DNA from: Zygnema circumcarinatum SAG 698-1b
Taxonomy: Eukaryota > Plantae > Zygnematophyceae
Direction of reading: 5' to 3'
NCBI GenBank assembly: GCA_037447605.1
Contig: CM074811.1
Location: 1,612,001 to 1,676,000 of the forward strand
Length of the DNA: 64,000 nucleotides
The translations under genes were made by a program, and so were the position numbers. Positions 14,411 through 58,760 of the stretch are shown here, piece by piece. Positions within the stretch are counted from its first letter, which is position 1; each line of letters begins with the position of its first letter. Below the pieces are notes generated by a model. It saw only the letters and a list, made by a program, of their open reading frames with translations, made no database searches and was not told the origin of the DNA.

Positions 14411-14444
14411 CGATTTTCATCGAATTGAGTTAACAACGATATCT

Positions 14445-14594: not shown

Positions 14595-14664
14595 ATCGTA
14601 TCAATATGAAATAGGTATTTTTTCGTATCAAGTAAATACCGATATGTACCGTGTCACTTTCAGG

Positions 14665-25326: not shown

Positions 25327-28300
25327 AAACCACTGCTGAAAGTGTCCATCGTCAACCCTCGAAGGTCATCATAAAGACGGCTGAGCCAAGGAAAAATGGA
25401 TCAGAAAGTACATTCGGTGCGTGTGGGGGCTACGCACCGCCACACAAGGCGGGAATGAGGAGATTTTCACTCAAGACCGGTGAAGCCTGTGCATCACCTG
25501 CAAGGGAGAAGCCCTCCTCCAAAGCTTTTACCACTTTCCACTCAGTCTGTGGATAAGCCCTCACTGCCACGTGTTGTGGGAGCAGGACTCGCAGACTGAG
25601 TACATGGTCTTTCGACCGCAGCAAGCGCAAGGCATCGAATGCACATTGCACCAAGGCATCACTGCCCATGGCATTCAAGATAATGACATGCCATTCATTC
25701 ATCAAGACAGCATTCGGAAATGCTGTTGGAGTCACAAGCATAGCAGGTGGCAATGAATAATCAGCAGGGAACGCTGTGCATACATACAACATGTTCCCGC
25801 TGAAAACTCCCCCAATCACATTAAGAATGTCATCCGCCCTTGGAATACAACATTCTACACTAGTGATGGCAGCTAATGCGCTGCCCCCCCTACTGTCAAG
25901 CCCACCAGCAGAGACTCCTAAGCTGCCGGTGGGGAGCCGTTTTCCGCCGGCCCCTTCCCCTTTCTGTCCTTCTTGAAAGAGGGGCAGTCATAAGACCTAT
26001 GCCCCACTTTCCTGCAACGAAACACTTGCTTTTCAAGGCCAAGAAGCTTCCATCTCCGTGGAGCAAGTTTTTGGCGGCCGCGGGCCGCTTGGTGCCGCCA
26101 CGGTGAGAGGAAGGAAATTTCCTCTTGCCATTCCCCTTAGGTCGGCCGCCTGGCGCACTAGCTTTGCGCGGCTGTTCGACCGTGTCCGCACGCGGGGGAC
26201 GGGAAGGCCCTGCACCATCTGTAGGCGCAACATCAGTTTGGACTGCAGCTGCAAACATCAGCTCATCATCCATAGCTCCCCAAGGTTCCAAGGTAATGCA
26301 GGATTCAAATTAAGCCGCTCAACGACGCTTCCCGTCGCGATCAACCTAAGAAGAATTTCGATCCGTGTGGGAACTTGGTAATCAAGCCTGCCGCACGCAC
26401 TCCCCAGACCAAATTTCCACGCTTTCCAGCCTCGCATGAGCGATCGAACCTCGCCCCGCAACAAAGATCGATCCAGATGCCAAAATGTTTGAGGAGTTCA
26501 CTCAAACTTCTCAAAGTCTTTTCCCGATAAAGCCTTGGGCGGCCGCATAATACTCCATGCCACGCCAAAGCTGGTGAAGCAAAGTTCACCATTGATGGAG
26601 GGCATTGCAGTACGCCGTGTACCCACCGCCTGTGCCCAATGATCGACGGGCACCGGAATGGCCATCTCCCCCATATGAGATCGGGGAACTCTCGCCGATT
26701 TCGGGAGTGATCCCGCATAGCCGGGCAGTCCACCATTGTGGTCGCCTTCGCCCGCCGCCAGCCAAATGGCGGTGGATTGCCGCTCAAGGTCCGCTTTCTC
26801 TTCAAAGGGAATTCCGCGCCGCTTCCCGCCGGCGGGAAGTAGCCGGGCGCTGGCGGAACTCCTCAGCCTCGGGCCGGGAGCGCCCCGGATCCACGTGCGG
26901 CCCGGCCGCTGTGCAAATGACGGTTGTGAGGTACTCAGACACCTACGCGCCGTAGCCTCTATCACTTCAGAGAGCCAGCCCATTGTATCTCGCCAAGACC
27001 ATGTGAGGAGGCTGTGGGCTTACCAAAGGGCCGGAGGGGAAACCCTGCTCACAGCCGCCCCGCCAAAGATTCGCCAGGAGGCGCCCCACGCTCGCTGAAC
27101 GCATCTTTGCCGTTTCATTCGAGCCGCCTCCAAGGAAAATTTCTTATCCAAGGCTGCCTCGCCTCGCCGGAGGACTCTCGCCCCCATCCACGGGGATGGG
27201 CACCCCCATGCTGACGGGAGGTGTCCGGGTGCTCTGCCCGCCGAGGGGGGCAGCCCCTTCCGACCTCTGTCGGGGCGCCTCTGGTGGAGGCGCTGCCGCT
27301 CCATGCGGCTGCGACCCGCGCTGCTCCCCTGGCAGCGGCTGGCCGCCAAGTTCCGGCCCCCGTGAAGAAGAAGGGGCAGCCGGAGGTGGGGCCGAAGGCC
27401 CGGGGCCCGTGTCCATGGGGTCGCCGGTCAGCCTTGATTCGCCATGTCCACGCCCCTCCTCCTAATCCGAGAAGGGGAGGTGAGGCGACGCCATCTCGCT
27501 AGGACGCCGCATTGCCTAGCTGTTTACGCCCCCACTAAAGAAAACCCGCGACCCAAAACGCGGCTCGGGATACTACTGTAACTACCCGCCGCAGCCGCTT
27601 CTCCAGAGCTCATGTGGAGAGAAGAGAGAGGGAGAGAGGAGCGAAGCTCACGCCGGTACAGCAGCTCGGATCGCTTCCCATCCGAAGCGCGTTCTAAGCT
27701 CCCCGCTGAACTCCCCTACCGCTGGAGGACCGAGCGATCCGCCTGGGGCCGAGCTCATCAAGGTATGAGATCCTAGCCGACCGATCGGGTTAAGGATTAA
27801 GCTCGCGGGTCTTCGCCAAGATCTCACGGCGCTGTGAAGGACAGCGGGCGCCGTCAGGTACTGGCAAGACGGCGGGTGCCCCGACAAAGTCGGGGACTTC
27901 GCCGCCAGTCTGCATAGCATCGGACGGTACTTGTTAAAGATGCCACCGCGATTCGTGGGTCGCGTCAAGACAGGCGGGCGCCGACGCAGGGAAAAAGCGC
28001 GCTACGCCGCATCTCGCCGCTGATCCAGAGGCCGTTCGTCCGCGCATCCGCACGGACGACCAAAGACGCATCCAAAGGGATCCCTTGCCCGCGGCAAGGA
28101 TCGAGCCCAAGACCCCTTGCGGTCTTGGCAGCGTCCTATCCTATTCGCTAGGCGCTGCGATGAAGGGGTAGTCATAGTATCACTATGAGTACGCCTCCGG
28201 GGTCACGCTGTAGCGTTACGCTACACCAACCCTCTGCTCCGCCCCATCCTCAACTGCAATACACAGGTCCCCGTCACAGTGGTCAAGAATTTCAAGATTC

Positions 28301-29625
28301 CCCAAACTCCCCCTCACTTTGTGCGTACCCTCATATGCCTCCCCTCTCGCCCTTCCTATGCCATCCACATGCCTCCTCATGCGCCGAACGGAACATGGGC
28401 ATCTCGAAAGCCGCCTCGCGGGACCGATTCCTACCGCAGCTTCACACACGCATGTCAACGGGTACGGCGAAAGTGATTTGTCCAGGAATCAGCGCACCCC
28501 CAAGGCAAAGCTGGGGGTGCTTTTACCAGCCCCGTGGGAGTGTGGCAAGAGGTGGAGCCGGGCGGGAGGCTATGAAGGCATCTCGACCTTGGGGATGAGG
28601 GGCCATGGACGGTTGATCGCTTTCGTGTGAGATCGGGCTAGAAGGTGCAAGAGAGCGTTCTTGTGGTTACGATGAGATATTTTGAGGGGCAGCCTTTGAC
28701 CGAGGTCTACGGTTCGAAAAGTAAGTCATACTTTGTATATTGGCGTTTGAAGGTTTTGTGACCCGCCTTGCACCAAACTCAAATTAAACATCAAACGATC
28801 GCAAGAAGGGAGAGAGACGATTGTGCACCTTCTCCCTCGCTTTGCATGTGAAAGGCGCGACGGGCCCGCGGCAACAGTATTTCTAAAAGGACAATTTTGT
28901 CGCGATTTGTTGCCAAGCGCATTTTGAGAAACCTACAAAGACAACACGCTTGTCGACGGGTTAAGTCAAGATCTAAAAGGCCCCACCCTGCATTTGAGTT
29001 TTCGTCCACACATTTGATGTCTCTCAAGAATACAAGTTCGTTACAAACGAGAACGTGTCCAACTCCTTTTTGCGCACTCTTTCAACAGTGAAACAACTAA
29101 TGAAATGAAAGATAAAGATAGCAACTAATTGGCTTAATAGGCTAACTAGGTTATTCCCCGGCCATTTTCATCTAATGATCATCTGGGTGACCTTCGGGCG
29201 TCGCTTCGGCGAGGGCTTAAAGCGTTGGTGAGCATGGGCAGAATTTAGCTCCAAGCTTTTCTTGACCTAAAAGTCATTTTACACTACCGCAGGGTTCCCC
29301 ATGCCGATGTTGTCCATAGATACATCTGATGGCATCACATCGCGGAGATGAACAAACGCCACTTCTTTCAATGATTTTCATCAAATTGAGTTAACAACGA
29401 TATCTATCGAACAAATCGATACCAATATTTATCGAGCGAATCGATACCAATATTTATCGAGCGAATCGATGCCAATATTTATCGAACGAATCGATACCAA
29501 TATTTATCGAACGAATCGATACCAATATTTATCGAACGAATCGATACCAATATTTATCGTATCAATATGAAATAGGTATTTTTTCGTATCAAGTAAATAC
29601 CGATATGTACCGTGTCACTTTCAGG

Positions 29626-30956
29626 AAAATGAGGTTTGATTGAACTCACGATGGCAAGGCCATCAAATGTACATGGAGAAAATCGACATAAGGAACCAAA
29701 AGAAGCGGTCACAAAGGACATAACGACAGAGAGAAAGCCTTCAAACGGAAATCAACTCTCAGACGCTAACAACACCAAGACTAGAAGCAAACAAGGTCGC
29801 CAATGTGGGCTAAAGACGCCACGAAGGGCGAAGACCACCGACGGGTCCCAACAACCGCCAAGACGCCGAAGGATCGGGAAGCAAGACAATCGGGCCAGAA
29901 GGCTTACTTCCGGGAAATGCGTTGTCGATAAAAGTTGTGGGTGATCGCTGGGAGGGTTTCCGGGCCGCGGTATCTCAAGGAGCGACAGCGATAAGGAAGA
30001 CTTCCAACCGAAAGTACTAAGGGCAAATTTCAAAAATTTCGACCGCGCCACTTGAACAAACTCATCGGCCGAAGTCGCCAGGTGAGCATGCGCCCTTACG
30101 GCATCACCGCCATGGCAAATGACGCCTCTGCGGTGTGCGGCACCTGATATCAAAGCACTCCGCCGGTCGATCAGCCAATACGACGTCTCAAAATACGTCA
30201 CGTCCAAAAGAGCAAGGTCAGGTCAAGATATCGTTTCACCGCTGAAGTCGGGCCGAGGTGGTATAACATGGGTTGGCTCTCACGCACAAGGTAACCCGGC
30301 CCCGAGCTACCTGGGCCAAGAATAAAGATCACCACAACATCAGGCTAAAATGCGCCGCCACCGCACACACCGGCACATGCACACCCCGCCAAGATCAATC
30401 AAACGACCACAACCACAACGGGAGAACCCTCGCAGCGGGGGTGGGGAGCCCAAGATCTAAGACGCTGTTACAGTTTAAACCGCTCTGAGAGAGAGTTGAA
30501 GGGTGGAAAATCGGCAAGAGCCAGCCACGCCCCTCGCACTGTGACCAAGACAAGACGCGAATGAGTTAACGCCAAGAATACCCAAGGGAGAGCCGCTAAT
30601 AAGCGGGTAGAAAACTCAAGAAGAACAACCTCCCTTCCTCACGCACAGTTCGACGCTATAAACACGCCTGCGGGAAACAAAAGGGGGAACACTCTGCTTG
30701 GGCACTAGAAGGGAGCAAACCATGAGCAAATACAAGCAGCAACTGAAGGGAAGATGACCTCATCATCAACATGATGTAACAAATGATCGAGCAACGGACA
30801 TCATCCACAAGGAAACGCGGAAGCTAGAACCGAGTAACAAGCGCCCAACTACCCAAAAGGCGTGGATGCACATGTAGTTGGGACAAGCCCCAAAACCGGC
30901 CAAGCAATAGGGAGCGAGGCTTGCAACCAGGCAAGCTGCCTTCCTGGCTGGTCAAA
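29626..30956 (-). mobile_element. CRE-like element, copy 3 (indel-rich sequence)
   Basis: Same junctions AAAATGAGGTTTGATTGAACTC ... GGTCAAA|CCACC. Confidence 0.8.
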
Positions 30957-31543: not shown

Positions 31544-34500
31544 TGTAACTACCTGCCCCCTGGCAGGCTGCTCTGAGAGTCTAAGTGTCAAGAGAGGAAG
31601 AGAGAGGGAGAGAGGAGCCGTGAAGCTCACTGCCGTACAAAGAGCTTCTGATCGCCTCCCCATCCGAAAGCAGCCCCCAAGCTCCCCTCCTGAACCCCCT
31701 ACCGCGATGGAGGACCGAGCTGACTGCCTGGCCAGAGTCGCGGGAGCGGAGGATCCTACCACCGATTGGTTATGACAAGCCCGCGGTCTCGCCAAAGATT
31801 CACCTGGCGCGTAGCGACGCTGGCACAAGCCGTCAGGTGGGGCCGGCAAGATTTAATTGGGTACGACCGGACAGAAGTCGATTTCGCTACCGTCCGCATA
31901 GCACGGACGGGTATTTGTCAAGATGCCACCGCGCCCGTAAGTCAGCGCTGCCATGGGCGCGCCGACGCAGTGGCGCGCTGCCAGATCTTCGCCGCGGATC
32001 CAGATATGTCGGTTCGGGTCTCGCGCATCCAGACGGACGCATCAGCATTATCCAAAGGGATCCTCGCTCACGCAAGTATGATCGAGCTCCAAGACCTCTT
32101 TAAGGCGTCTTGGCAGTCAGTTCTATCCTATTCCGCTAGCGCCAAGGATAAGGGGTAGTCATAGTATCACTATGAGTACGCCTCAGTCGTATTTGTTGCG
32201 TTCGCTACGTACTTTCCCCACAGTATGTGACGCCCTGGATTCCTTTGGGAGCGATAATTTTGGCGACCAGCGGCCAAAAAGTGCAGCGCCTGCAATGCAG
32301 GGGTGTCTGGGAGGCACCGGCGTTAATCGGTCAAGTCCACTTTCAGGAAGTAAGCGTGGGCCGGTTCGGGAACCCCCTAGCCGCCCTAAGCCAGCTCACC
32401 CGGCGTGCGCCTCCCGATGCGATCTCGGGGCTTTCAGGTGCGATTTGTCCGGTGCTCTCCGTTTACGTCTTGTATTTCAACTTATAGCCCAGCCATTTCT
32501 GAATATTACGTGGCGGGAAATCGACCTCTACTCCGCGATCTGTGGGTTTGGATGGCCTTTACCTCATACTCGAGGTCACCCTCAACTTCCAGCGGAGGGA
32601 GGTGGTTGGACTCTCCCATGTTAGCGGTATGCCTTAAGAGAACCCACGCAAGAAAGGCGGATGCACTTTCATATGGCCGTCAAAAACCAACCCGGTGGCG
32701 ACCTCACCGGTCGCACTTCATGACCAGAAAAGATTTACATGAAGCCCGAGCCACCTTTCTGGTTCCTTGAAGTAAGTCTTGACATGAAGTTAGCCCGTAC
32801 TTTCGGCCCGATTACTGATAAGCCCCTCGGCTGAAGGTTAATGCAACTGCGGCCCGACGATCGACATAAGGCTTTCTGCCTTGGCCCGGGGCCTTCTTGA
32901 TTACGCCTTGCCCTCTGTAACGCCTCGGACATTTTCCGAGTGAAAGCACTAACGGCGGGAGGTTGACTCCCGCCAGCTCCTCTCACGCCCCAAGGATCCG
33001 GGAGCCTGTGAACATCCATGTTCCACAGATCAGGCTGCTGATCTCTTGGCTGCAGGGGATTTAGAGGATGCTAACCAAAGTTCAAAAAGAATGGAGTGGT
33101 ACCGATTGATTCCTGGAATGCATTATTAATGGCGTATTCAGCCACCGGGAGCAGTTCATCCCATCCATCCGGGATAGGTCCCACATAATGCCTCAAATAG
33201 TCTTCCAGAATCCGGTTAACCCTCTCCGTCTGCCCATCTGTCTGAGGGTGGAAGGCTGTACTCATAGCCTGCTTAGTCCCGATAATACGGAGGATTTCTT
33301 TCCAGAACTGCCCTGTGAATCGGGTATCACGATCTGAGATGATCTCAGATTGAAGTCCATGTTGACTCCAGACCTTGTCAACGTAGAGTCGTGCGATTTC
33401 ATCGGCTCCAGCTGTCTTAGCAGTGGGTGCAAAGTGCACCATCTTGCTGAGCCGGTCAACGAACACGAGGATGGAGTCAAAACCCCTAGCTGTCACAGGT
33501 AAGTCTGTGATCAAGTCCATGCCTACACTCTCCCACTTCCTGTAAGGAGGTGTGAGCGGTTNNNNNNNNNNTCTAACACCATCAAATGCCGCCTGGCACT
33601 CTGGTGTCCATGCATACGCGACACCGGAACGTGTCAAATTGGTAAGAGGTGTTACCAACTTACTAAAGCCTTGGATAAACTTACGAAAATAATTCGCAAA
33701 TCCAAGAAAAGACCGCAACTGATGAAGATCAGCCGGCACAGCCCATGTCTTTACAGCAGACACCTTGGCTGGATCAAGTTTCAGTCCCTGATCGTTCAAG
33801 ATATGCCCAAGATATAACAACTCTCGTTGCATGAAGTTACACTTCTTTCGCTTGGCATAAAACGTGTGTTTTCGCAACACCTCGAACACTTTGCGTACAT
33901 GCACAAGATGGTCAGCGTCCGTCTTGCTGAATACCAGGATATCATCCAGGTAGACCAAGACAAACTTATCCATGCCGACGAACATTTCGTTCATCACAGC
34001 TTGGAACGTAGCCGGAGCGTTGGTCAATCCAAAAGGTAGCACCTTGTACTGGAAGTGACCAATCGGCGTCCGAAATGCCGTCTTAGGCACATCGGCATCC
34101 GTGACACGGATCTGATGGTACCCTTGGGCCAAATCGAGCGAGGTGAACACCCTCGCCCCTTGTAGACGATCTAGCAGATCATCTATCCGTGGTAAAGCAA
34201 ACCTGTTCTTTACCGTGATTTTATTGAGTGCTCGATAATCGATGCACATTCGCAAAGACCCATCCTTTTTGCCTACAAAAAGGATAGGGGCGCCAAAGGG
34301 ACTTTGGCTGGGTTCAATCCAGCCCTTATCACGCAGATTAGCGAGTTGCTTGCGCATCTCTTCGGTCTCCTTTGGGCTAAGCCGATAGATAGGCCTCCAA
34401 GGAGNNNNNNNNNNAAGCGTCAGCCATTTGCTCCCCAAGATAAAGTCTGTTCCTGGGGCTAATAACGTCAACAAGCAGTTGACCACCCCGGAGTAAGACT

Positions 34501-39164: not shown

Positions 39165-39622
39165 ACAAGCAGCATCTCCATTCCTCTAAAAGGCATTGCA
39201 GTGGGCAACGGCTTGACTGCAGTTGCAAACGATGCTCTGAAGAGGCATTTGTTCAAGTATGTCAAAAATCATATCACTCCTTTCATGGAGTACGCCCTGT
39301 GGCCCCCCGCAAGCCAATGGCGGAGGCAGGCGCCTTGTGCCGCCGTCCCCTCCCCTCCCTCCGTACAGCGAGCGAGCTGGCGCGAATTCCATTGACGGAC
39401 GTTGAGTGGGCCACAAGCGCGCAGTGGCTCGCGTCCTCATCCTGCGATGTCGGTGCCCTATGTTATAATCCCAAGGCAACGCGCCAACGTCCCTCTCTGT
39501 CCCAAGCCATGGCGGAGGAAGGCGCCCTCCCTCCCCGCAGGCCCCTCCCTCCCCTCCCCGCCCTCTCCTCGCCTCTGACCGCCCCCGCGTCCCCTGGTGT
39601 CTCCGGCGGGCGCTTGGCCGCG

Positions 39623-42600
39623 ATGGCGCGCGCGCGGTCTCTCTCTCTCGCGGCGGCGCTCCTCCTCTTTGCCGCCGCCGCCGCCCCGCGCGAAGCCGCC
39701 GCTCAGGCCATCGACCCGCGAGACAGTGAGCCGCCGCGACCCGCCCGCCCGCCCTCTATGGAAGAAGGGGAGAGGCGGCCTGCCCGCGGTGGCGCCTCTG
39801 TTTGTGCTTTTTGAAGCGGACCGCGGCCTCAATCCAATCCTGCATCTGCTCGCGCTTGGGCGCAGGGGACGCTCTTCTCGCTGTCAAAGCGGCATTCAAC
39901 AACACGCAAGATCTCACCTCCTGGACAGCGAGTAACCCCGACTGCAGCGACTGGAGTGGGACCAAGGCGGATTGGGGGAGTGGGATCACATGCGACGCAA
40001 GCGGGCGCGTTACTTCGCTGTGAGCCACAGTTTGACTGAACACCGCTTGTGATGTTGGAGGCTCCGCGGATTCCATAGCTGCTGAAATGCAGGCCGAGGC
40101 TTCGAGGAGGGTCTGCGGGAAGCAGCCTCCTCAGAAAGCGGCTGAAAAGGGCCGTCCGGAGCAGTACTTCTACTGTCCGCGGCCCTTTCTACTTCTGACG
40201 CTCGCACTGCTAACCTGCCTTATGCAGACAATTCTACAACTACGACTTTGGAGGAACCATTTCACCTGCCATCGGTAACCTGACAAAGTTGACACAGTTG
40301 TAAGTGACTCCATTTTTTAGGATGCGTTCCCTGCATGTTTGCGAGTACAAAGTGAAAGGGATGAGGTTGCGAGTACAAAGTGAAAGGGATGAGGAGGGCT
40401 CAGATATTTGGACGTGCTTAATTAGTAGAAGCACTGAACCACTAAGCAACCTCGCCTGCAATGCGTGTTCGCGTCCTGGCTCGGCTCCACATGCACACGC
40501 TTCAAGTTCAAGATGCCACGTCACACTTACGTGGTGCATTGCAGTTGCTTTAGCACATGAGTGTTTTCCGCATGAGTATTGCATTTTGCTGGCAATATCG
40601 GCAAGACTCGTGAAGACGTTTTTTTATTCTTGGCAGATACTTGTCCTCTATTTCCCTAACGGGGCCTATCCCGGATTCCATCGGCAGACTTGCGAATCTG
40701 CAACTCTTGTAAGTATACTTCCCCATAAATCTGAAATGAAAGTGATAGAAATGCCAGACAAAGGAACGCCAGTGATGGAAATGTTAGTCGTGGCAGCATG
40801 TTTATTCAGTGCCCTTTTTCTTAATTTTTGCAGAATCTTGTCTTCTAATTCCCTAACGGGGTCTATCCCGGATTCTATCGGCAACCTTGCGAATCTGCAA
40901 TCATTGTAAGTATTTTTCCCTATAAATACGAAATGAAAGTGATAGAAATGCTAGACAGAGGAATGCCAGTGAGAGAAATGCTAGTCGAGGCAGTTTGTTT
41001 ATTCAGTTCCTAATTGTTTTTTTTTGGGCAGATATTTGGATCAAAATTCCCTAACGGAGTCTATCCCGGATTCTATCGGCAACCTTGCAAATCTGCAATA
41101 CTTGTCAGTATTTTTCCCTGTAAATCTGAAATGAAAGTGATAGAAATGTCAGAAAGAGGAATGCCAATAATAGAAATGCTAGTCGTAGCAACATGTTTAT
41201 TCAGTTCCTATGTTTTTTTATTTTTGGCAGATGGTTGGGTTATAATTCCCTAACGGGGTCTATCCCAGATTCGATCGGCAACCTTGCGAATCTTTATTGG
41301 TTGTAAGTATTTTCCCCTATAAATATGAAATAAAAGTGATAGAAATACCAGACAGAGGAATGCCAGTGAGAGAAATGCTAGTTGAGGTAGGTTGTTTATT
41401 CAGTTCCTAATTGTTTTTTTTTTTGGCAGATATTTGGATCATAATTCCCTAACGGAGTCTATCCCGGATTCTATCGGCAACCTTGCAAATCTGCAATACT
41501 TGTCAGTATTTTTCCTTGTAAATCTGAAATGAAAGTGATAGAAATGTCAAAAAGAGGAATGCCAATAATAGAAATGCTAGTCGTAGCAGCATGTTTATTC
41601 AGTTCCTATGTTTTTTTATTTTTGGCAGATGGTTGGGTTATAATTCCCTAACGGGGTCTATCCCGGGTTCTATCGGCAACCTTGCGAATCTTTTTTGGTT
41701 GTAAGTATTTTTCCCCATAAATCTGAAATGAAAGTGATAGAAATGTTAGAAAGAGGAATGCCAGTAATAGAAATGCTAGTCGTGGCAGCATGTTTATTCA
41801 GTTCCCATGTTTTTTTATTTTTGGCAGATCCTTGTCCTCTAATTCCCTAACAGGGTTTATCCCAGATTCTATCGGCAACCTTGCAAATCTGCAATACTTG
41901 TAAGTATTTTTCCCCATAAATCTGAAATGAAAGTGAAAGAAATGTCAGACAGAGGAATGCCAGTGATAGAAATGCTAGTCGTGGCAGCATGTTTATTCAA
42001 TGCCCTTTTTTTATTTTTATTTTTTGGCAGATACTTGTCCTCTAATTCCTTAACGGGGTCTATCCCGGATTCTATCTGCAACCTTGCGAATCTTTATTGG
42101 TTGTAAGTATTTTCCCCCATAAATCTGAAGTGAAAGAGATAGAAATGCCAGACAGAGGAATGCCAGTAATAGAAATGCTAGTCGTGGCAGCATGTTTATT
42201 CAATTCCCATGTTTTTATTTTTTTGGCAGATCCTTGTCCTCTAATTCCCTAACAGGGTTTATCCCACATTCTATTGGCAACCTTGCAAATTTGCAATACT
42301 TGTAAGTATTTTTCCCCATAAATTTGACTTGAAAGTGAAAGAAATGTCAGACAAAGGGATGCCAGTGATAGAAATGATAGTCGTGGCAGCATGTTTATTC
42401 AGTGCCCTTTTTTTATTTTTATTTTTTGGCAGATATTTGTCTTCTAATTCCCTAACAGGGTCTATCCCGGATTCTATCGGCAACCTTGCAAATCTTTATT
42501 GGTTGTGAGTATTTTTCCCCATAAATCTGAAGTGAAAGAGATAGAAATGCCAGACAGAGGAATGCCAGTGATAGAAATGCTAGTCGTGGCAGCATGTTTA

Positions 42601-43665
42601 TTCAGTTCCTATTTTTTTTTTTTGGCAGGTACTTGTCCTCTAATTCCCTAACAGGGTCTATCCCGGATTCTATCGGCAACCTTGCAAATCTGCAAAGATT
42701 GTAAGTATTTAAGATGCTGAAAGCCCCCTCACCCCATACCAGATCGCACTGAGATGTCAAGAATCTTCCAACCAATCACATCACAGTGTCAGATACGCTT
42801 CAGATTCTGCCCTGTGCCACTCCTCCTCCTGGCGGTGCCTGCGAGCGGTGCCTTCCGCCCGTGAGAGGACACGTGTCGTGTCAATTGCGCTCGGCCCTTC
42901 CGGCATCTCCTCCCCCATGCCATGCAACGCTGCGCAGTAAAAATTTAATCTGGCACTGCGGTTTTGTGAGACTGCGTTTGAGAATTCGACTATAGAACGT
43001 GGAGTTGAATACCTGATTTACTCCTGTTCAGTCCAGAATCAGCCTTATCCTTTTCGTGAGCTTTTTGTCGTTGTGCGTGTCTGAAGGTATTTGGACAACA
43101 ACAAATTGGAGGGGAGAGTGTCCGGCTTCATTTCTAAACTCACCCAACTTCAGAACCTGTGAGCACCGCTGCATCGATGACGTTGTATTTGCAGTTTGAC
43201 TTTTCTCTCTCGGCCGAGCATTTGTACCTCTCAAACTATTACATTTATTTTGCGGTTGCATGAGTTTTAAGTTTATCGCATATGTTTGGTCACTTCTGTC
43301 ACGGCGCGGGCTTTTTCGACGCACAGTAACGGGCAATTTTGCATGCGAGAAATTGGACTTCGTTATTGAGAGTTTAGGATTTAAAGTTTATGGATTAGGG
43401 TTAGGGTTTAGGCTTTAAGATTGTAGGTTTTAAAGTTCGAGGGGTTCAGGGGCTTGTGAGTTAAAGGATTTAGAAGCTATGGGGGTTCAGTGGGTTCAGG
43501 GTTTATGGGATTGCAGGTAGAATGGATATAGGGAAAGGCTCAGAGATTTAGGGGTTCAGTGTTTGCAGGCTGAAGGTTGCATAGGGTCGTGAAGATGGAG
43601 TCAGAGACTTTGCAGACAGCACAAGCGAATGTTTTCAGTGGCTGAGACACATCTGTTGGAAAGTT

Positions 43666-43698
<33 letters not shown>

Positions 43699-46553
43699 GC
43701 TCTCTCTAACGCGCCACCGTTAATGTCATCAGGTGGTTAAACAACAACAAGTTGACTGGCTCCATAATTCTTTCGAGCAATTCCCTTTATGACGGGTACA
43801 TTTTGTTCCAAGACAACTACTTCTCCGGGCCAATCAACATTACGAAGTCTGGGAAACCCTATTGCCAAATCAATCTCTCCAACAACTGCATATATCGCAA
43901 TATCACAGGATGTGGCGCAGCTCAATATCAGAGACCTCCGCAAGAGTGCGCGGCCTTCTGCCAGAGCGGTTCGCCCGAGGGAGCGTGCGGGGGCCGCGGC
44001 ACTTGCGGGTACGGCACGGCCACGTGTACATGCGACAAGGGATATGCGTTGGCATCGGACACGTGTGGTGAGTTGCAACCTGCTGCTTGTAGATACTCGC
44101 GAGAAAGGAAAAGTAAAGGGTGGCAGAGGTTGTGGAAACTATCGAATTGCTATCAAGTTTTACTCTGTCGTTGCTGTTAGAGCACACCGAATGCGATCCA
44201 TTTGATTCCGCCAATGGAAGAGGTTCAATTCTCGAACTTCTTGAAGCATATCGCAAGTATTACTTGGTGAACTCTGCAAGCTCATTCTGTAAATAGCGTA
44301 GAGTTTTCAGGATGTATCGAGAGTGCCGCTCTGATATAATGGTTTTAGTTTTCAATAATTTTCTCGACCCAATCCAATCCCGTGCAAGCTACAACATATC
44401 TCGGCTCCATTTGCAGTAGCTAGATAACCCGCGAGTTTGACCTTGCTGCTTTTCAAAGACAAAATTGCGTAGCTCGAGAAGTGGCATAGGGATCTGATTT
44501 TCCGTTGAGATGCCTAGCCTAAGAGGCACATAGATGATAAAATATCACGTTAAAAGACTTGCAGTAAGTTTAATTTCTTCTTAATTTCTTTTTTTTTTAA
44601 TTTTTTTTTTTAATAGTTTCGATTTCGTTCTGCATCTTCCTAGAACGTTTATAAGGACGTGTTATGATTAGAATATGTAATCTATGGAAGAAGTGAGTCC
44701 ACCTTTAGTAATGAAAGGGAACTCACAAAACTCCCTGAATTACTGCAGCTTCACCATCCCCTCCATCCCTTCCTCCGCGTCCACCTTCTCCACGTCCTCG
44801 ACCCCCTCCTCGGCGTCCCCCTCCGAGCTTTTCTCCTCCACTTCCTCCTCCTCCTTCACCACTCCTTCCAAGCCCTTCTCCTCCACCCCTTCCTCCGCCT
44901 TCACCACCCCCTCCGAGGCCCTCTCCTCCTCCCCGTCCTCGACCCCCTCCTCGAAGCCCTCCACGTAAACCTCCTCCCAGTCCTCGACCCTCTCCTCTGC
45001 GTCCCCCTCCGAGCACTTCTCCTCCACCCCTTCCTCCTCCTTCACCACTCCCTCCAAGCCCTTCTCCTCCACGCCCTCCTCCTTCACCACTCCCTCCAAG
45101 CCCTTCTCCTCCACGCCTTCTCCTCCACCCCTTCCTCCGCCTTCACCATTCCCTCCGAGCCCCTCTCCTCCTCCGCTTCCATCTCCTCCTCGAGGTCCTC
45201 CACGTAAACCTCCTCCCAGTCCTCGACCCCCTCCTCGACGTCCCCCTTCGAGTCCTACTCCACCACCCCTTCCTCCTTCACCACTCCCTCCAAGCCCTTC
45301 TCCTCCACGCCCTCCTCCTTCACCACTCCCTCCAAGCCCTTCTCCTCCACGCCCTCCTCCTTCACCACTCCCTCCAAGCCCTTCTCCTCCACCCCTTCCT
45401 CCGCCTTCACCATTCCCTCCGAGCCCCTCTCCTCCTCCGCTTCCATCTCCTCCTCGAGGTCCTCCACGTAAACCTCCTCCCAGTCCTCGACCCCCTCCTC
45501 GGCGTCCCCCTCCGAGCTTTTCTCCTCCACTTCCTCCTCCTCCTTCACCACTCCCTCCAAGCCCTTCTCCTCCACCCCCTCCTCCTTCACCACTCCCTCC
45601 AAGCCCTTCTCCTCCACCCCTTCCTCCGCCTTCACCATTCCCTCCGAGCCCCTCTCCTCCTCCGCTTCCATCTCCTCCTCGAGGTCCTCCACGTAAACCT
45701 CCTCCCAGTCCTCGACCCCCTCCTCGACGTCCCCCTTCGAGTCCTACTCCACCACCCCTTCCTCCTTCACCACTCCCTCCAAGCCCTTCTCCTCCACCCC
45801 TTCCTCCTTCACCACTCCCTCCAACCCCTTCTCCTCCACCCCTTCCTCCTTCACCACTCCCTCCAACCCCTTCTCCTCCACCCCTTCCTCCTTCACCATT
45901 CCCTCCGACTCCGACCCCCTCCTCGGCGTCCCCCTCCGAGCTTTTCTCCTCCACTTCCTCCTCCTCCTTCACCACTCCTTCCAAGCCCTTCTCCCCTCCT
46001 CCTTCACCACTCCCTCCAAGCCCTTCTCCTCCACCCCTTCCTCCGCCTTCACCATTCCCTCCGAGCCCCTCTCCTCCTCCGCTTCCATCTCCTCCTCGAG
46101 GTCCTCCACGTAAACCTCCTCCCAGTCCTCGACCCCCTCCTCGACGTCCCCCTTCGAGTCCTACTCCACCACCCCTTCCTCCTTCACCAGCCCTTCTCCT
46201 CCACCCCTTCCTCCTTCACCACTCCCTCCAAGCCCTTCTCCTCCACCCCTTCCTCCTTCACCACTCCCTCCGAGGCCCTCTCCCTCCCTCACATTTTTTT
46301 TCTCTCTTTGACCACTCCGTGTGCAGGAGCATGCGGTGCATCTGTCCCGAACTTCTCCCTCTGGGCGGGCCGCGACTCCTTCAGTCCCGACTCGTCCCGG
46401 CGGCCCTCGCCCGACGCCGCCGTCTGCGGCCTCGCCTGCTCTGCGGACGCGTCCTGCGCCGCCTTCGTCCTCTTCAACAACGTCTGCTACTTTAAGAACG
46501 CGGCGGGACCCCTCGCGTACAACAGAAACGCTTACTATTTCAAAAAATGTTGA
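39623..46553 (+). CDS. Secreted LRR-EGF-(Ser/Pro-rich extensin-like)-PAN/apple protein, multi-exon
   Basis: Signal exon 39623-39725; LRRNT exon 39866-40019 ([25 protein letters not shown]); thirteen 72-nt phase-2 LRR exons (40228, the eleven-cassette array 40637-42700, 43087). Then an LRR-cap plus EGF exon 43733-44067 (CGGRGTC..CTCDKGY..C), a Pro-rich exon from 44749 and a PAN exon 46328-46553 ([18 protein letters not shown]). No TM segment seen. Confidence 0.8.
40622..42710 (+). repeat. Tandem array of 11 LRR exon+intron cassettes (~199-bp period)
   Basis: Exon starts at 40637, 40834, 41032, 41231, 41430, 41629, 41828, 42031, 42230, 42433 and 42629; each 72 nt; introns highly similar to one another. 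Confidence 0.95.
43374..43600. repeat. Degenerate interstitial telomere-like (TTTAGGG) tract inside an intron
   Basis: TTAGGGTTAGGGTTTAGG core with TTCAGGG/TTTAGGGG variants. Confidence 0.7.
43665..43707. repeat. (CT)n microsatellite
   Basis: Direct inspection; lies in the polypyrimidine region upstream of the 43733 acceptor. Confidence 0.9.
44749..46290 (+). repeat. C/T-rich coding-type minisatellite encoding SPn/RPPP extensin-like repeats; several frame-shifting indels
   Basis: Reads [20 protein letters not shown]... from acceptor 44748; the Pro frame shifts near 45115, 45910, 45995 and 46190. Confidence 0.85.
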
Positions 46554-47046
46554 GAGCGTCCCTCTCTCATTGGCACAACCTTAAGCTTGCAGCACTCTCG
46601 AGGAGATGTTAGAATGTCTAACAAACTTCACATTCACGTTAGAGTGTTTACTTCTTTCAGGATGTTAATTGGAATTTGATTGATGATGTTGATGGTTTTG
46701 AACTAAGATTATTAGAATTGGCACTTCGCCAGGCTAATCCAAAGCGTTGCGAAGCAAAGTAGACTTTCGTTTTTGTGAAGTGATCCTTCCAACCTCCCGC
46801 CCGTTCACCCTCCTCGATCGTCTTTTTGTTTCTTTTTCCTAGTCGCTTATAAGCAGTTTTTTCTTGGGTCCAAAGAAATTTTATTCAAGTGCTCGTCTAA
46901 AGGTTGTCAACGTCAATTGTGTTTTTGTTGCATTCAAATATCGGATGCTTTTCATGCTACTGAAAACCTCCGTTTTCCCCTTTTTTTCAAGATTCATCTT
47001 TCTTCATCCGCCTGCTACTAACGGTCTCCTTGACGCTGCCCTGCAG

Positions 47047-47277
47047 GTGTGCCTTGAAGCGGCGGATCTGGGCCAGGCGAAGGGCTGCAAAGGGAGACCT
47101 GACGAGCTGCAGGCGGGCGACTCCTGCATCAATTTGAAGAAGGAGTGCTATTCGGCGAAGGAGACTTTCAAGAAGATGACCGGCAAGCCCTGCTCTGAGA
47201 AGTTTCTGAAGACCCTCAGGGCGCAGTACACGACCGCGGCCAAAGTCTGCGTCCCGACGAGCAGCACGTGCACGTAG
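47047..47277 (+). CDS. Orphan 3' exon encoding a small 6-Cys peptide
   Basis: Pyrimidine tract plus CTGCAG acceptor; VCLEAADLG..GC..SC..EC..PC..VC..CT*; upstream exons not identified. Confidence 0.4.
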   Translation: MCLEAADLGQAKGCKGRPDELQAGDSCINLKKECYSAKETFKKMTGKPCSEKFLKTLRAQYTTAAKVCVPTSSTCT

Positions 47278-47357
47278 CGGGAGTCGTCTCGGGAGTCGTA
47301 GCGGGAGTAGTCTCGGGAGTCGTAGCGGGAGTCGTCTCGGGAGTCGTAGCGGGAGTC
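47274..47357. repeat. 12-bp tandem repeat x7, alternating GTAGCGGGAGTC / GTCTCGGGAGTC
   Basis: Direct inspection; the first unit supplies the TAG of the preceding ORF. Confidence 0.9.
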
Positions 47358-47659
47358 GCCTCTCTAGTTTCTACTAAACCAAAAAGCTCAAAAGGGAGGG
47401 CTATCGTGACTTTTAACACGTGGCGGTCCAGGAGTGGACCACGTGGCACACTTTGTTCGTCCTTACTGGTCATCGGTTAGATAGGTCCATTGTTGGAGAT
47501 ACACTTGAGAGCGTGTGCCACGTCAGCATGAGGTCGTTCTGTTAAGCGGCAATCTTGACTGGCCTATTATTCCTTTGTGGCGAACTTGGCCGGTAAATCG
47601 GACACGTGGTGGACTGCAATGCTCCACATGGATTCCTTAAAGGAAAAAGGGGAAACTTT

Positions 47660-47960: not shown

Positions 47961-50900
47961 ATGGTCTTTGCCATGTCTCTTAAGAGTTCTGTTCACTCTC
48001 TCTGCAACTCCATTGCAACTCCATTATTACTCCATTCTTCGCGCTTCGTCCTCTCGGGTAGAAGTAGAGTCCGGGAACAAATTCTGGGGGCATGTTTGCT
48101 AACATTGCCTCCCTCTTGGCCGCTTCAAGATCCTCTGAATCTTGCGCGTGTAGCGGGACCTTCTCCACTGAGTTCTCTTCTTCACCACTGGAGTGACTGT
48201 GAAGGGGAATCGTCTTCACTGAATTTTGCGGCTCCTCCGCATGCGCCTCCTCGGGCGTCACTCTAACATCAGCCGACTCGCTCGTTGCTGCCGCTGGCTT
48301 AGCTCCTTCATTCGTCGACGTGCTGGCATCCTGCACAGCACCACCCTTCTCTCCAACTGTCTCTCCCTCCTCGTACACGATCTCGAGGTCGGTCTTTGAC
48401 GGAGGTAAGATCTGAGAACACGCTCAACCGCACTATCTTCATCAACTGTAATGTCTCTCGTCTGGAGAACTTCTTTAAGTCGAGGGTTCCAAACCCTGTA
48501 GGTGCGGTTGCTGGTGTTGTAGACGAGCACGTAGCCCTCCACGGCTCGAGGGTCGAATTTCTTCTTCTGCTGCGCTTTGGGCAGTGCAGCCCAACATCGC
48601 GCGCCAAAGGTCCTCAGGTGGGAAACTGTAGGCTTCCTCCCACTCCACATCTGTTCAGGGACCCGGTTTTTCAAGACAGAAGATGGACATCTGTTCCTAA
48701 TGTAAGCAGCCGTAGAAACTACTTCTCCCCAAAAGGAAGTCGGAAAGGGGGAATCAATCAACATGGTCCTGGCCATGTCCCCCAATATCCTATTCACACG
48801 TTCAGCTGCTCCATTACTCTGTGGGGAATAGGGGGACTGAGAATTCATGCCTTATACCGCAGTTCTTCAGAAACGCTGCGAATTCTTTCGATTTGAACTC
48901 GCCACCATTGTCCGAACGAAAAGCCTTCAGCTTCTGTCCCGTCTCCTTCTCCGCCTGGTTCAACCAGTCTCGAAAGGCTCTGAAAGCCTCTGACTTGTTC
49001 TTCAGGAGCGTAATCCAAATCTTCCTCGAATAATCGTCAAGGAAGGTGACGAAGCACCGCGCTCCGCCACTGGTCGCCAGTGTAACAGGCCCGCACAAAT
49101 CGGAATGAACTAGCTCCAATCACTCCTTCGCTCGAAAGGACTCATCTCCACTTCTCACGAACGGTTTCCTGTGCGCCTTGCCCTCCACACATTCTCGGCA
49201 AACACCCAGCTTCTTCTCCACTATAGTCGGGTCTAGCCCACGGACTAACCCCTTTTCAGCCAACACCTTCATGCCTCTGTGGTGTAAGTGACCAAGTCTA
49301 CGATGCCATACTTCTACAGCATTCTCTGNNNNNNNNNNCTTTTTCATTGATGACTGAGCCGTCTTCGAGGACCATCCTCACGGCTCCACCTCTTGTCACG
49401 GTGACTCCTTCACCAGTTGCTGAATGGACTGAGTTTGTCTTCTCCACGTTGTCGAGCTTGGAGAACATCGATGTGTCCCTGCACATGTGTGTGGATGCGC
49501 CGGAGTCAATTAGCCACAGCCGCTTCAGGTCCTCTGCCTGAATCCTTCCCACAAAATCGTGCTCAGTATTCTCTGCCAGTATGAGGTTGCTTTCAACTGC
49601 TACCTTACAGTCTGAACTCTTGTGACCTCTCTTCTTGCACTTGAAACAAGTGCCGTTGAACACCTTCTTCTCTTTCTTGCCGGATGAAGTCGCGTTTCCT
49701 CCCTTCTCAAGACTGCCTTTGTTTTTGAAACAGTCGCTAGAATAGTGGCCGGTCTTGCCACATGTGTAGCATGTCACATTCGAGCGCTCTCCTCGGGCAG
49801 ACTTTGGGGCGCCTCCTCCTCTTCGATTCGGTCGAGTGTGCAACGCAAGCACCTTCTCCTCTTGGCTGCCGACATCCTGAATCGAATCCTCCTCTTTTAT
49901 CCTACGCTTAGCTTGTTCAAGCGTCATAGAGGTATTGGTCAGAACTGTCCTCAAGGCTGCCACTGAAACTTCGAATCTCCTGGGCAAACCCCCTAGAAAC
50001 TGGCTTATCTTATGGTCTGCATCTAATGGTTTCCTTAAGGCTATGAACCTTTCCATCAATGCATCAAATCTGACCATATAAGCTTCTAATTTCTCCTCTG
50101 AAGTCATCGTCATTTTGCCTAGATGTGTGTAAAGACTGACGATCCTCACATTGTCTTTCACATCATACATCTCTTCTAGACACTTCCACATAGCATGAGA
50201 GGTTTTCAGATCATACAGCATAGAGGATGGACTTCCTCTTACGCTCATTACAATCTGCGTCAGAGCTTTGTTGTCCTTGATCTTCCATCGAGCGAGCGCC
50301 ACATCGTGCTCCGACTGCTGCTCCGCTGAGGCTCCAACTGGTAACTCTGGCGCCTTGATGCTGCCATCAACATACCCAAGCAACCCTTTGCCCACAAACA
50401 AAGGCACCAACCTCCATCTCCATGCTTTGTAATCCTGCCCATCAAACGCCGGTATGCTGAACTTGACGTGGTCCTCCGCGTCACCATGAGCTCTGATACC
50501 ACTTGTCGATGCAGGGACTCCTCCATTGCCTCCAACTTCTCCACTCGCATCACCCTCCATCGGAGTTTGCGTTCCGATTGATGACGACATTTCCAAACTC
50601 TCTCTCACATTCACTCATAGCCTATTTTACTCACAGAGTGAACCTCACAGGATAATGCACAGCGGAATAACAAAGAGAAAGGATAGGAGAAAGCTCACAA
50701 CTCTAAAACTCCTTAATAATAAAACTTATCAACACAAATAAGAGACCCCCTCTCAAATCGCCCAATAAACTCAAAAGCCCACTACCTCGCAGCACAAGTA
50801 AGTGTAATGTTCAGCAACACAAGCATCAGCTTCTCAGAGTCTACAATAGCTACGTTGATAATCCAGAAGTTATCTACCATACAAAACAACACACTAAATA

Positions 50901-52079: not shown

Positions 52080-55000
52080 AAATCATGCTAGCTATCATAC
52101 ACTAATAGAGGCTAAACTCTCGAAAAACGACAAGTTCAAAATCTCCTATGAATTGGACAGTGACGATTCAGTGGTGCGAGAAGACGAACCGAACAACGGA
52201 GATGCGCTAGCGGAAACTACGTCACCAACTCATTTTGAATCGGACGGTGGCGTTGCGCCTGGCGGCGCGGCATCACCAAATCAGTCGGAATCAACGGCGA
52301 TTGATTCACCGACACTTCCAACTGGTCACAATGACGTGGCACAACGCGAGAGGTCGTTAAGTGACATTTTTGAGTCTCTCGACTGACTACCAGTCAAACG
52401 ACTGACTGTACCTTCTCCCTTATCATCTTTTGTACCTGTAACGACAAGAGTGCCGCTAACTAGAGTGGCCGTACAGCAGGAGGGAGTTCGCCTCCGAAGG
52501 CCGAACAGGCGCTACCACCCTTTAGAGTGGGAGGTAAACAGAGCAAGCGGATAGAGGATGCCAACCGACTCAGCCGACTTTGCCGTCGTCGTTGAAGTCT
52601 TGATGACCACTATCGGTGAACCCCAAACCCTTTCTGAAGCTGTAGAAGGGGCAAATGCTGACAAATGGGGAGTAGCCATTGAGAGTGAGCTAGATAGCCT
52701 TAAGGAAAACAAGACTTGGCGGCTGGTAGAGTTGCCAAAGGGGAGGAAGGCAATAGGGTGCAAGTGGATTTTTAAAGTAAAAAGGAAATCAGATGGGAGC
52801 ATTGATAGATACAAGGCTAGGTTAGTAGTAAAAGGGTTCAGCCAGCAATATGGGCTTGACTACTTAGAAACTTTTGCTCCAGTAGTCAAGTTTAGCTCCT
52901 TCAGATCTCGTATATTTTGCACCAGCGGAAAAGATGCATGTTCACCAATTTGATATAAAGACAACGTTTTTATATGGAGAGCTGGAAGAGGAGATCTTCA
53001 TGGACCAGCCGGAAGGAACAGTGAAGAAGGGAGAAGAACATCTAGTATGCAAGCTTGTGAAAAGCTTGTATGGGCTGAAATAAGCCCCTCGCATCTGATA
53101 TGGAAAAATCGACAGCCTCATGAGAGAAAATGGCTTCATTAAATTTGAAACGGATGCTTCAGTTTACAAGAAGGGAGAAGGAGCTGCATTGATGTATGTA
53201 GGGATCTATGTAGATGATCTTATCATCATCAGTCTGTCAATGGGGAGCATTCAGAGTCTGAAGGAGCTTCTGAAGACCAACTTTTAGATGAGTGATTTGG
53301 GAGAAGTTGAGTACTTGCTGGGCATTCAGCTTAAGAGGGGGCATGAAGGTAACTTATTCCTTTGCCAAGAGAAGTATGCCAAGGATGTGCTAATCAGATT
53401 CAGCATGCAGGATTGCCATCCTGTTACCTGCCCCATGGACCCTTATGTCCATCTCTCCCATGATATGGCTCCTCAGACAAAGGAAGAGAAGAAGCATATG
53501 GACAGAGTTCCGTACAGGTCAGCCATTGGTAGTCTGATGTACCTACAGGTTGGAACACGACCTGACTTGGCTAAGGCAGTCAGTATGGTCTCACGATACA
53601 TGCAGAATCCTGGCTCGGAACATTGGGAGGCAGTTAAGCAAATCTTTCGCTATGTGAAGGAGACGTCACAGTTCGACATTAATTTTGACAGTGGAGTTGA
53701 GACTCGGGTGTACGGATACACTGATTCGGATTGGGGCGGCGACGTCGATACGTCCAAATCAACATTTGGATACGCTTTTGTCAACGCAGGAGGTGTGTTG
53801 ACGTGGAGCTCGAATCTTCAAGCAACGATTGCGCTATCGAGTATGGAGGCAGAGTACATTGCGGCATGCCATGCAAGCAAGGAAGCGATCTGGCTTCAAA
53901 ATTTCTTTGCTGAGTGCGAACGTCCCCAAATCCCGGTACAGATCCTTACTGATAACCAATCATCAATTGTGTTGGTATAGAATCCGGTGTTTCATAAAAG
54001 ATCGAAACATATTCGGTTGTAGTATCATTATGTCAGAAAATAGGTAGAGGATGGCCTAGTGACCGTTGGATTTGTCGACACGAAAGATCAGGCAGCTAAT
54101 ATGTTAACCAAGGGAACGAACAATGAGATCGTTTGGAGGAACAGTATTCTTATCGGAGTAGGACCTTTTCGTGGCTAGGATCGAGAGGGGGAATGATGTG
54201 TACAATAGGGGTATAGCCCCGAACAGTACACCGTACGGTCCTTAGCCGTTGTCATAGGTCCTTAGGAGATTTAGTCTGAGCGTGGACCGATCGACAATCT
54301 TTGTCTCTTAGTGAGAACACGTAGGACTAGTCCTTTGGCCACATGGCGAGCGGCTATAGGTCGCGTCGACACAGGAAATATTTAGAGTCGTTTAAGGATA
54401 GTTGTGACACATGGCGCGCAGTGATAGGTTGCGTGAACAGCTTAGTATTGCTTATTGTTTCTTGCGGTCAACCGTACATTTGTCCGGCGTACGGATGGAT
54501 GCTGGAGTGGTGCGCGCATTGTCGAGGAAGCTTCTCAAAGGAAGGCAAGTCGGAGGAGGAAACTTTTCTATACGGACACTCTCCTTCCTGGCCATGGCGA
54601 CCCTGAGGGAGAATTACCGCTCAGTGAGAGGCGAGCGCCAGGAGACGTGGAGCGTCGCCAACGACATGGAGGTGCACGGTGCGGTGGAGCGCGACAACGT
54701 GCGGTGCAGCGTAGTGGCGAGCAATGGCACGCAGTAGATCGTGGAGTACTGCAGTGCTTAGTACTTNNNNNNNNNNAACCGACTCAGCCGACTTTGCCGT
54801 CGTCGTTGAAGTCTTGATGACCACTATCGGTGAACCCCAAACCCTTTCTGAAGCTGTAGAAGGGGCAAATGCTGACAAATGGGGAGTAGCCATTGAGAGT
54901 GAGCTAGATAGCCTTAAGGAAAACAAGACTTGGCGGCTGGTAGAGTTGCCAAAGGGGAGGAAGGCAATAGGGTGCAAGTGGATTTTTAAAGTAAAAAGGA

Positions 55001-57326: not shown

Positions 57327-57327
57327 T

Positions 57328-57339
57328 TGGTATCAGAGC
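57328..57339 (+). promoter_or_regulatory. tRNA-iMet primer-binding site
   Basis: GTTACA-T-TGGTATCAGAGC directly after the LTR end (duplicate at 59452-59463). Confidence 0.85.
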
Positions 57340-57344
57340 CTAAG

Positions 57345-58460: not shown

Positions 58461-58653
58461 CCGGTATTTGCAATCCACCCTAAAAACACCGTGATCTCTG
58501 AGCATGGTACGAGGAGGAACCCTTAGTGGCTTGAGGGTCTAAGGCCATGGCCAGGGTCCATGTGTTGAAGGAGCTTGAATGCTGCTCGTGAAAAACCTTG
58601 AGTGCGCTCGAGGACGAGCCCGATTTAGGTGAAAAGGAATATAACAAAACGCT

Positions 58654-58760
58654 ATACATAGGTTGTATGGCTTAGTACTTACATCCGCGGTTGCCTTTTA
58701 ATGGTAAAGCACTAAGGTGGTTACCGGGAGGTCCTGAGTTCAAACCCTGTTACGATAGGT
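58654..58760 (+). mobile_element. tRNA-derived SINE-like head (duplicate at 60778-60884; related 5' part at ~63597-63640)
   Basis: Box-A-like TGGCTTAGT / TGGTAAAGC and box-B-like GAGTTCAAACCC; shared AAACGCTATACAT.GGTTGTAT.GC.TAG with 63597. Confidence 0.35.

Follow-up and report, generated by a model that had tools for sequence, protein, structure and literature searches.

Does a run of exons that each encode a single leucine-rich repeat (LRR), interleaved with introns as conserved as themselves, amount to an active diversifying system, or is it a binding domain that has grown by tandem copying? The question is raised by a gene in a stretch of 64,000 nucleotides (the window; positions 1,612,001 to 1,676,000 of contig CM074811.1) from the streptophyte alga Zygnema circumcarinatum SAG 698-1b. 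An earlier reading of the letters alone (the sequence-only reading) had described 11 consecutive one-repeat cassettes in this gene and had proposed a fast-evolving or splice-diversified secreted recognition protein. The explanation that we favour, and consider quite likely, is a young tandem array of LRR exons that lengthens the binding domain of a germline gene for a secreted LRR protein.

Anatomy of the cassette array

Tandem Repeats Finder (TRF) reports a single tandem array on the plus strand at 40618-42710, with a period of 199 (10.5 copies, 84% matches) and a second period of 402 bp over the same interval (5.3 copies, 89% matches), which corresponds to two units. Extraction of AG-72 nt-GT units resolved the array into 11 cassette exons, all of 72 nt with AG before and GT after each, and ten GT-AG introns that measure, in order, 125, 126, 127, 127, 127, 127, 131, 127, 131 and 124 nt. 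The proposed architecture, 11 cassettes of one 72-nt phase-2 exon plus an intron with one LRR each, is confirmed by both approaches. The introns are short and in phase 2 as described, and only their length range had to be amended, from the claimed 125-131 nt to 124-131 nt. Each exon opens with the last base of a codon, continues through 23 full codons and ends on the TT of the next one, so all introns are in phase 2, and the split codon at every junction is TT/A or TT/G, leucine in either case. With this junction leucine included, the cassette consensus fits the 24-residue plant-specific repeat LxxLxxLxLxxNxLxGxIPxxLxx position by position. The cassettes are modular and symmetric, as had been stated, and every one of them is frame-neutral. 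Each beta-strand is split across a junction, half of it coming from the end of one exon and half from the start of the next.

Along the plus strand, cassette exon 1 (40637-40708) begins YLSSI and ends QL, and exon 2 (40834-40905) runs from ILSSN to QS. Exon 3 (41032-41103; YLDQN to QY) is 99% identical to exon 5 (41430-41501; YLDHN to QY), and both are followed by a GTCAGT donor. Exons 4 (41231-41302; WLGYN to YW) and 6 (41629-41700; WLGYN to FW) alternate with these. Exons 7 (41828-41899) and 9 (42230-42301), both SLSSN to QY, are 96% identical, and exons 8 (42031-42102) and 10 (42433-42504), both YLSSN to YW, are 92% identical, the tenth with a GTGAGT donor. Exon 11 (42629-42700; YLSSN to QR) closes the array. 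These starts and ends, as the exons encode them, are exactly those that the sequence-only reading had listed. The donor is GTAAGT in 8 of the 11 cassettes, and the GTCAGT of cassettes 3 and 5 is a weaker one. As a set, the splice sites are uniform and strong, with a long poly-T tract and CAG on the acceptor side.

Mean pairwise identity is 0.85 among the cassette introns and 0.83 among the cassette exons, so the intron is, as claimed, about as well conserved as the exon. The introns (40709-42628) are themselves built of three to four sub-repeats of about 15 nt around GAAATGCYAG, and TRF reports a period of 15 at 40944, 41725, 42139 and 42540. A search with the intron consensus for other arrays or orphan cassettes had been suggested; run on the 64-kb window, it returned matches to the intron core motif only inside the array (0 expected by chance), with no orphan cassette and no second array.

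Variation on the exposed face

Identifying the 23 full codons of each cassette allowed us to rank them by amino-acid diversity. Diversity is highest at five of them, exon codons 23, 1, 4, 3 and 22, corresponding to LRR positions 6, 8, 11, 10 and 5, which are the canonical exposed x set of xxLxLxx; five random positions would match this set with a chance of 1 in 33,649. The exposed xxLxLxx residues are the binding face of plant LRR ectodomains, and in plant LRR proteins diversifying selection classically acts on these x positions. The earlier claim that variation is focused on the ligand-binding face over a conserved backbone is thus upheld. In composition, the exposed face is 40% Tyr, Trp or Phe and 31% Ser.

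Changes per site were counted as minimum changes, a lower bound that needs no tree. The 15 nucleotides of the x-codons reach 1.47 changes per site, compared with 0.41 in the introns and 0.32 in the backbone, that is, the rest of the exon. The x-codons therefore carry 3.6 times the intron changes per site (Poisson p 6e-7 for the excess over the intron rate), and 15 of 15 x-codon nucleotides are variable, compared with 49 of 131 intron columns (Fisher p 1.5e-6). Backbone third codon positions have changed at 8 of 18 sites, as often as the introns (0.41 per site), and the similarity of the introns therefore reflects youth and not constraint. Pairwise Nei-Gojobori estimates of non-synonymous (pN) and synonymous (pS) divergence give 0.056 and 0.20 for the backbone, a ratio of 0.28, and an x-codon pN of 0.48, where the introns diverge by 0.13. 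The cassettes differ far more at the exposed positions than in the surrounding neutral sequence. The backbone ratio indicates purifying selection, and hence that the cassettes are translated.

That ratio also bears on whether the array is real and functional. Its copy number could have been inflated by misassembly, or the gene could be a pseudogene with a decaying, satellite-like array. Several 100%-identical duplicates do flank 10-N gaps elsewhere in the window, the register of the Pro-rich exon downstream changes four times, and the gene's own product is missing from protein collections, all of which would fit such a history. The array itself, however, contains no N, and its units are 72-99% identical to each other and never 100%. 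None of the 11 exons is interrupted by a stop, the 22 splice sites are all intact, and the backbone is constrained as described. Additionally, among 24 sequencing runs found, six that look like DNA, covering at least four samples and three studies, contain 51-70% of the sampled 31-mers of 39600-44100. We regard an artefact or a dead gene as very improbable. Several further runs of unknown kind contain 11-22% of the sampled 31-mers, a fraction that would fit exons only, though this does not amount to evidence of splicing.

History of the array

The order of events can be read in part from the identities between blocks. Between blocks 3-4 and 5-6 identity reaches 93%, between blocks 7-8 and 9-10 it is 93.5%, and the remaining block pairs lie at 83-87%, which points to two recent two-unit duplications (3-4/5-6 and 7-8/9-10). 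Throughout, cassettes of an 'A' type ending in QY alternate with those of a 'B' type ending in YW or FW. The nearest neighbours of a unit differ by segment. For example, exon 4 is nearest to exon 6 and intron 4 is nearest to intron 2 along its full length; intron 6 is nearest to introns 3, 5, 7 and 8. In a PHI-type test, compatibility between neighbouring informative sites exceeded that in every one of 2000 permutations, and no single tree accommodates 29% of the informative site pairs. These patterns show that the units are recombinant mosaics, between which unequal exchange or conversion has continued after duplication.

Mosaicism limits what the comparison of x-codons with introns can say, since between mosaic units their ratio is no clean rate ratio. 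The plain statement that x-codons evolve a given number of times faster than introns was rejected as stated for this reason, and an omega above 1 at the x positions is not demonstrated. Of the earlier description of the protein as fast-evolving, the 3.6-fold excess of changes stands, whereas the mosaic units and the youngest pairs do not bear out acceleration. The four youngest pairs (3/5, 4/6, 7/9 and 8/10) differ at 14 exon sites. Synonymous changes account for nine of these; of the five non-synonymous ones, three fall in the backbone and only two at x positions (Q/H and Y/F). Their introns differ at 3, 20, 7 and 10 sites, respectively.

One possible explanation for these observations is a neutral young expansion, in which an older pair of LRRs of types A and B that already differed was amplified, gene conversion homogenised the introns and backbone, and the focus on x positions reflects relaxed constraint and history. 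The A/B alternation, with only about six or seven distinct states at the x positions, agrees with this, as do the mosaicism and the PHI-type test in supporting exchange between units. In the youngest pairs the x-codons, which differ at 4 of 60 nt, have changed no more than the introns, which differ at 40 of about 508 nt. Free conversion, however, should have erased the x differences too, unless selection keeps them. Moreover, the contrast between fully variable x-codon nucleotides and mostly invariant intron columns is accompanied by several multi-nucleotide codon changes, and concave-face x positions are known targets of diversifying selection elsewhere. We consider a purely neutral expansion rather unlikely.

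The young array that lengthens the binding domain may have arisen as follows. The ancestral plan of the family assigns each LRR its own exon of 72 nt in phase 2. In the Zygnema lineage, a single exon of this kind would have been copied in tandem together with adjoining intron sequence, and as the likely mechanism we infer unequal crossing-over, or else replication slippage, that broke within the introns. Single units may have been copied first and two-unit, 402-bp blocks later, with 3-4 giving rise to 5-6 and 7-8 to 9-10. Exchange between units after duplication would then have made them mosaics. The five exposed residues of each beta-strand differ by cassette type and alternate between A and B, giving a concave face rich in Tyr/Trp and Ser, and selection has probably created, or at least preserved, the x differences against homogenisation. 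All 11 cassettes are most likely spliced constitutively into one long solenoid, so that diversification would proceed on an evolutionary time scale, through copy number, exchange and point changes, and not in RNA or somatic cells.

Several points weigh against this account. The x positions show no excess or acceleration in the four youngest pairs, where numbers are small, and the x-codon pS is also 0.48, equal to pN, though over very few sites. The x-codon excess may thus in part represent older A/B differences kept amid homogenisation instead of faster change. Expression and constitutive splicing are here conclusions from purifying selection on the backbone and intact splice sites, and the gene's own product was found neither by a HMMER search with exon 16 of the gene against 1.84 billion representatives nor by a word-index protein search over lengths of 0.55-1.75 times the query. 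The presence of artefactual assembly duplicates elsewhere in the window matters as well, as the copy number of the array rests on the assembly. Finally, the C-terminal gene model is unsettled, and the gene could be damaged downstream.

Possible diversification by splicing or other active means

Could the diversity arise at the level of RNA? If the symmetric cassettes were skipped or mixed under regulation, a single gene would supply a whole repertoire of LRR proteins. The frame neutrality of every cassette would permit it, and the division of each strand between two successive exons agrees with it. The weaker GTCAGT donor in two cassettes also fits, and alternative splicing of 72-bp phase-2 LRR exons has been reported in Ectocarpus (PMC11378527). 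Against this, the introns change like backbone third codon positions, and they hold no significant or covarying structure able to act as docking or selector elements. A single cassette intron folds no better than shuffles (z -0.81), and in the consensus fold of nine introns (1 to 8 and 10) none of the 15 pairs shows a compensatory change, with a covariation term of -0.61. An RNA function of the introns was rejected, as neither the single-intron nor the consensus folds were better than shuffles. Dscam-type splicing systems differ here in their conserved intronic docking and selector pairings, which were not found in the cassette introns.

The uniformity of the splice sites (poly-T tract with CAG, GTAAGT in most donors) speaks against regulated skipping as well, as does the shortness of the introns at 124-131 nt. 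Short introns in plants favour intron definition, with little exon skipping. Retention would not add variants either: every cassette intron, if retained, brings an early in-frame stop, and the GTAAGT donor reads TTG TAA immediately, so a retained intron would yield no protein. Relatives without amplification have the same exon plan. Regulated splicing is in our view improbable.

The lamprey VLR type of diversification is built differently, as it consists of an incomplete germline gene flanked by donor cassettes without splice sites. In Zygnema the germline gene is complete and in frame, splice sites stand on every cassette, and the 64-kb window holds no orphan cassettes. The proposal of an active diversifying system is not supported, given the neutral-like introns, the lack of RNA structure, the uniform strong splice sites, the stops on retention and the ancestral exon plan. 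We attach a low probability to the array acting as a cassette repertoire, whether by regulated skipping and mixing or by very frequent unequal exchange between strains or cell lines. If it did, the alga would possess secreted LRR wall proteins, Tyr/Trp-faced and variable as a set, with which to recognise pathogens, mates or self, and receptor diversification like that of brown algae would be placed at the base of the land-plant lineage.

The gene that holds the array

The array sits within a larger plus-strand gene model (39623-46553). Exon 1 (39623-39725) holds the ATG and an N-terminus that, judged by eye, resembles a signal peptide, with a basic start and an Ala/Leu-rich hydrophobic core. 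Exon 2 (39866-40019), with AG/GT borders, encodes the plant LRR N-terminal cap LRRNT_2 (Pfam PF08263, E 1.4e-05, 25.7 bits against a gathering cut-off of 20.7). The first LRR is exon 3 (40228-40299), again 72 nt and phase 2 but diverged, with 26% identity to cassette 1. The 337-nt intron between it and cassette 1 contains a perfect 28-nt tandem duplication (40339-40394; 2.0 copies, 100%). Downstream of the cassettes, exon 15 (43087-43158) is another diverged 72-nt LRR, 35% identical to cassette 1. Exon 16 (43733-44067) carries the last LRRs, a Cys-rich C-terminal cap and an EGF-like module, for which Pfam EGF matches are weak and under the cut-off (E 0.014-0.038) and invariant columns are found in relatives. 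Joined from the ATG through the EGF exon, exons 1-16 form one open frame of 509 codons with AG/GT at every border, and the joined gene has 15 plant-type LRRs.

The frame runs on from the EGF exon into the last exon or exons (44749-46553), whose model is uncertain: a basic, Pro-rich (extensin-like) stretch is followed by a Cys-containing, PAN-like end (weak PAN matches, E 0.005-0.03, under the cut-off) and a stop at 46551-46553. The Pro-rich region with its C-rich repeats (44749-46330) is open in one frame for 601 codons. Its Pro-rich register switches frame four times, near 45110, 45920, 46010 and 46190, so that long parts read Leu/His-rich, and the TRF periods of the region include 59, which is no multiple of 3. 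Either the assembly of this repetitive rod contains indel errors, or introns have gone unrecognised. A CCAC/GTAAAC site near 44967 would be in phase with the acceptor ahead of the PAN-like part at about 46326.

Compared with solved structures, the cassette profile, built from cassettes 1 to 9 and 11, matches only plant LRR ectodomains, with FLS2 first (3.4e-35), followed by GSO1, MIK2, BRI1 and SERK, and also LRX2 and PEX1. No transmembrane segment and no kinase was found in the gene model. The signal-peptide-like start, the LRRNT_2 cap and the profile matches support the sequence-only reading in that the protein is secreted and belongs to a green (streptophyte) lineage, with LRRs of the plant type. 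Most likely the array supplies the ligand-binding domain in an ordinary germline gene, whose secreted LRR product is probably anchored in the wall. Its ligand may be a peptide, a glycoprotein or a polysaccharide.

Relatives in the Zygnematophyceae

Searching with the cap/EGF exon 16 returned 11 distant relatives, at most 42% identical (HMMER, the same representatives). They come from Mesotaenium endlicherianum, two Closterium strains and other assemblies, with identities of 32-42%, and share 12 invariant Cys, Gly, Asn or Gln columns with exon 16. Together they outline a Zygnematophyte family of LRR, cap, EGF and Pro-rich parts, in which Mesotaenium ME000014S01168 and Closterium CAI5970454.1 and CAI5459971.1 share the Cys cap and EGF-like module. 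Some members have a Pro-rich tail after the cap/EGF part, as the Zygnema gene does; the Mesotaenium member runs into a transmembrane segment and a kinase, neither of which is present in Zygnema. The relatives' transcripts have 4-10 diverged LRRs and no run of near-identical cassettes.

The exon plan of one relative can be followed in its genomic sequence. In Closterium sp. NIES-64 (CANXGL010001739.1, 2999-12043), eight LRR exons measure exactly 72 nt and agree with those of Zygnema in phase and borders, at distances of 375 nt to about 2.7 kb from one to the next. As Closterium has 72-nt phase-2 LRR exons too, the plan of one repeat per exon is ancestral to the group. What is special to the Zygnema gene is only the recent tandem amplification. 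The eight Closterium exons span 9 kb, and the annotated product of the locus is a 168-residue partial (6001-7219); that gene model is probably incomplete.

Comparison with known repeat-exon systems

The closest precedent in exon design comes from brown algae. Their ROCO and LRR-kinase genes have 72-bp phase-2 exons of one LRR each in tandem runs, with variable or positively selected sites on the concave face, and receptor diversification has been proposed for them, including by alternative splicing (PMC3341825, PMC11378527). The earlier statement that one-LRR-per-exon shuffling is published for brown-algal ROCO genes is borne out by these papers. The Zygnema array resembles them in its 72-nt one-LRR exons, phase-2 introns and concave-face variation. 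The brown-algal proteins are, however, cytoplasmic ROC-COR GTPases or kinases of stramenopiles with another LRR class, whereas the Zygnema gene has no ROC-COR part and encodes a secreted protein with plant-specific LRRs, LRRNT_2, an EGF-like module and a Pro-rich tail. In the Zygnema array, in addition, exons and introns have been copied together very recently. On this comparison of sequences, the array would work like ROCO-type arrays without being a member of the ROCO family.

A second precedent is found in Tetrahymena, which has thousands of LRR genes with 90-bp exons that grow by unequal crossing-over and are associated with REP retrotransposons (PMC6564038). Shared with Zygnema are units of an exact-length exon and an intron of characteristic length, an extreme phase-2 bias and a junction codon across neighbouring exons. 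The ciliate system differs in its 90-bp unit (72 bp in Zygnema) and in an LRR class that is not of the plant type.

Within plants, the ectodomains of FLS2, GSO1 and MIK2 share the 24-residue plant-specific LRR and the LRRNT_2 cap. Land-plant LRR domains are mostly encoded by a single exon (PMC10588794). The LRR-extensins (LRX) resemble the Zygnema gene in the order of their parts, namely signal peptide, LRR, Cys-rich hinge and Pro-rich tail. In the Zygnema tail, the first 120 or so residues are Pro-rich with SPPP/SPPPP, but the register then shifts as described. The Zygnema gene also has an EGF-like hinge and a PAN-like end, both missing in LRX proteins, and LRX2 and PEX1 are weaker matches to the cassette profile than receptor kinases. 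A 2016 survey of algae, Klebsormidium among them, did not find LRX proteins (PMC4769139).

In the literature, including the Zygnema genome paper, we found no description of such arrays in streptophyte algae. The array follows a known way for LRR proteins to grow, and no new diversity-making mechanism was found. Its value lies in how plainly it displays that way. An ancestral plan of one repeat per exon lets unequal exchange add whole turns of the solenoid with the frame unbroken, and as each strand draws on two adjacent exons, new strands come with every exchange. The locus offers a clean case of how the binding surface of a plant-type LRR protein can be lengthened and re-patterned quickly. 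Taken alone it is a good textbook example; a genome-wide account of such arrays could inform how LRR receptor diversity arose before plants reached land.

Surroundings of the gene

The window contains twelve N runs. Stretches of 1.4-2.2 kb that are 100% identical flank runs of exactly 10 N at 20369-23160, 52563-56980, 56837-61074 and 33797-34404, and look like overlapping contig ends that were joined unmerged, a scaffolding artefact. The region 12646-38700 is dense in dispersed repeats whose copies are 74-96% identical (for example 12646-14879 and 15976-18177, or 13236-14892 and 28226-29853), and identical short peptides turn up in minus-strand frames at 14193, 17536, 29155 and 38533. This region probably holds several copies of one transposable-element family.

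Downstream, 1.7 kb after the stop of the LRR gene, minus-strand open reading frames at 48258-50614 resemble Ty1/copia-type gag (zinc knuckle) and integrase and are broken by N runs. Between the gene and these frames, the interval 46864-47362 holds an open reading frame of 137 codons without a Pfam match, whose C-terminal half is Cys-rich and Lys-rich. Directly after it stands a 24-nt tandem repeat (47273-47362; 3.8 copies, 95%).

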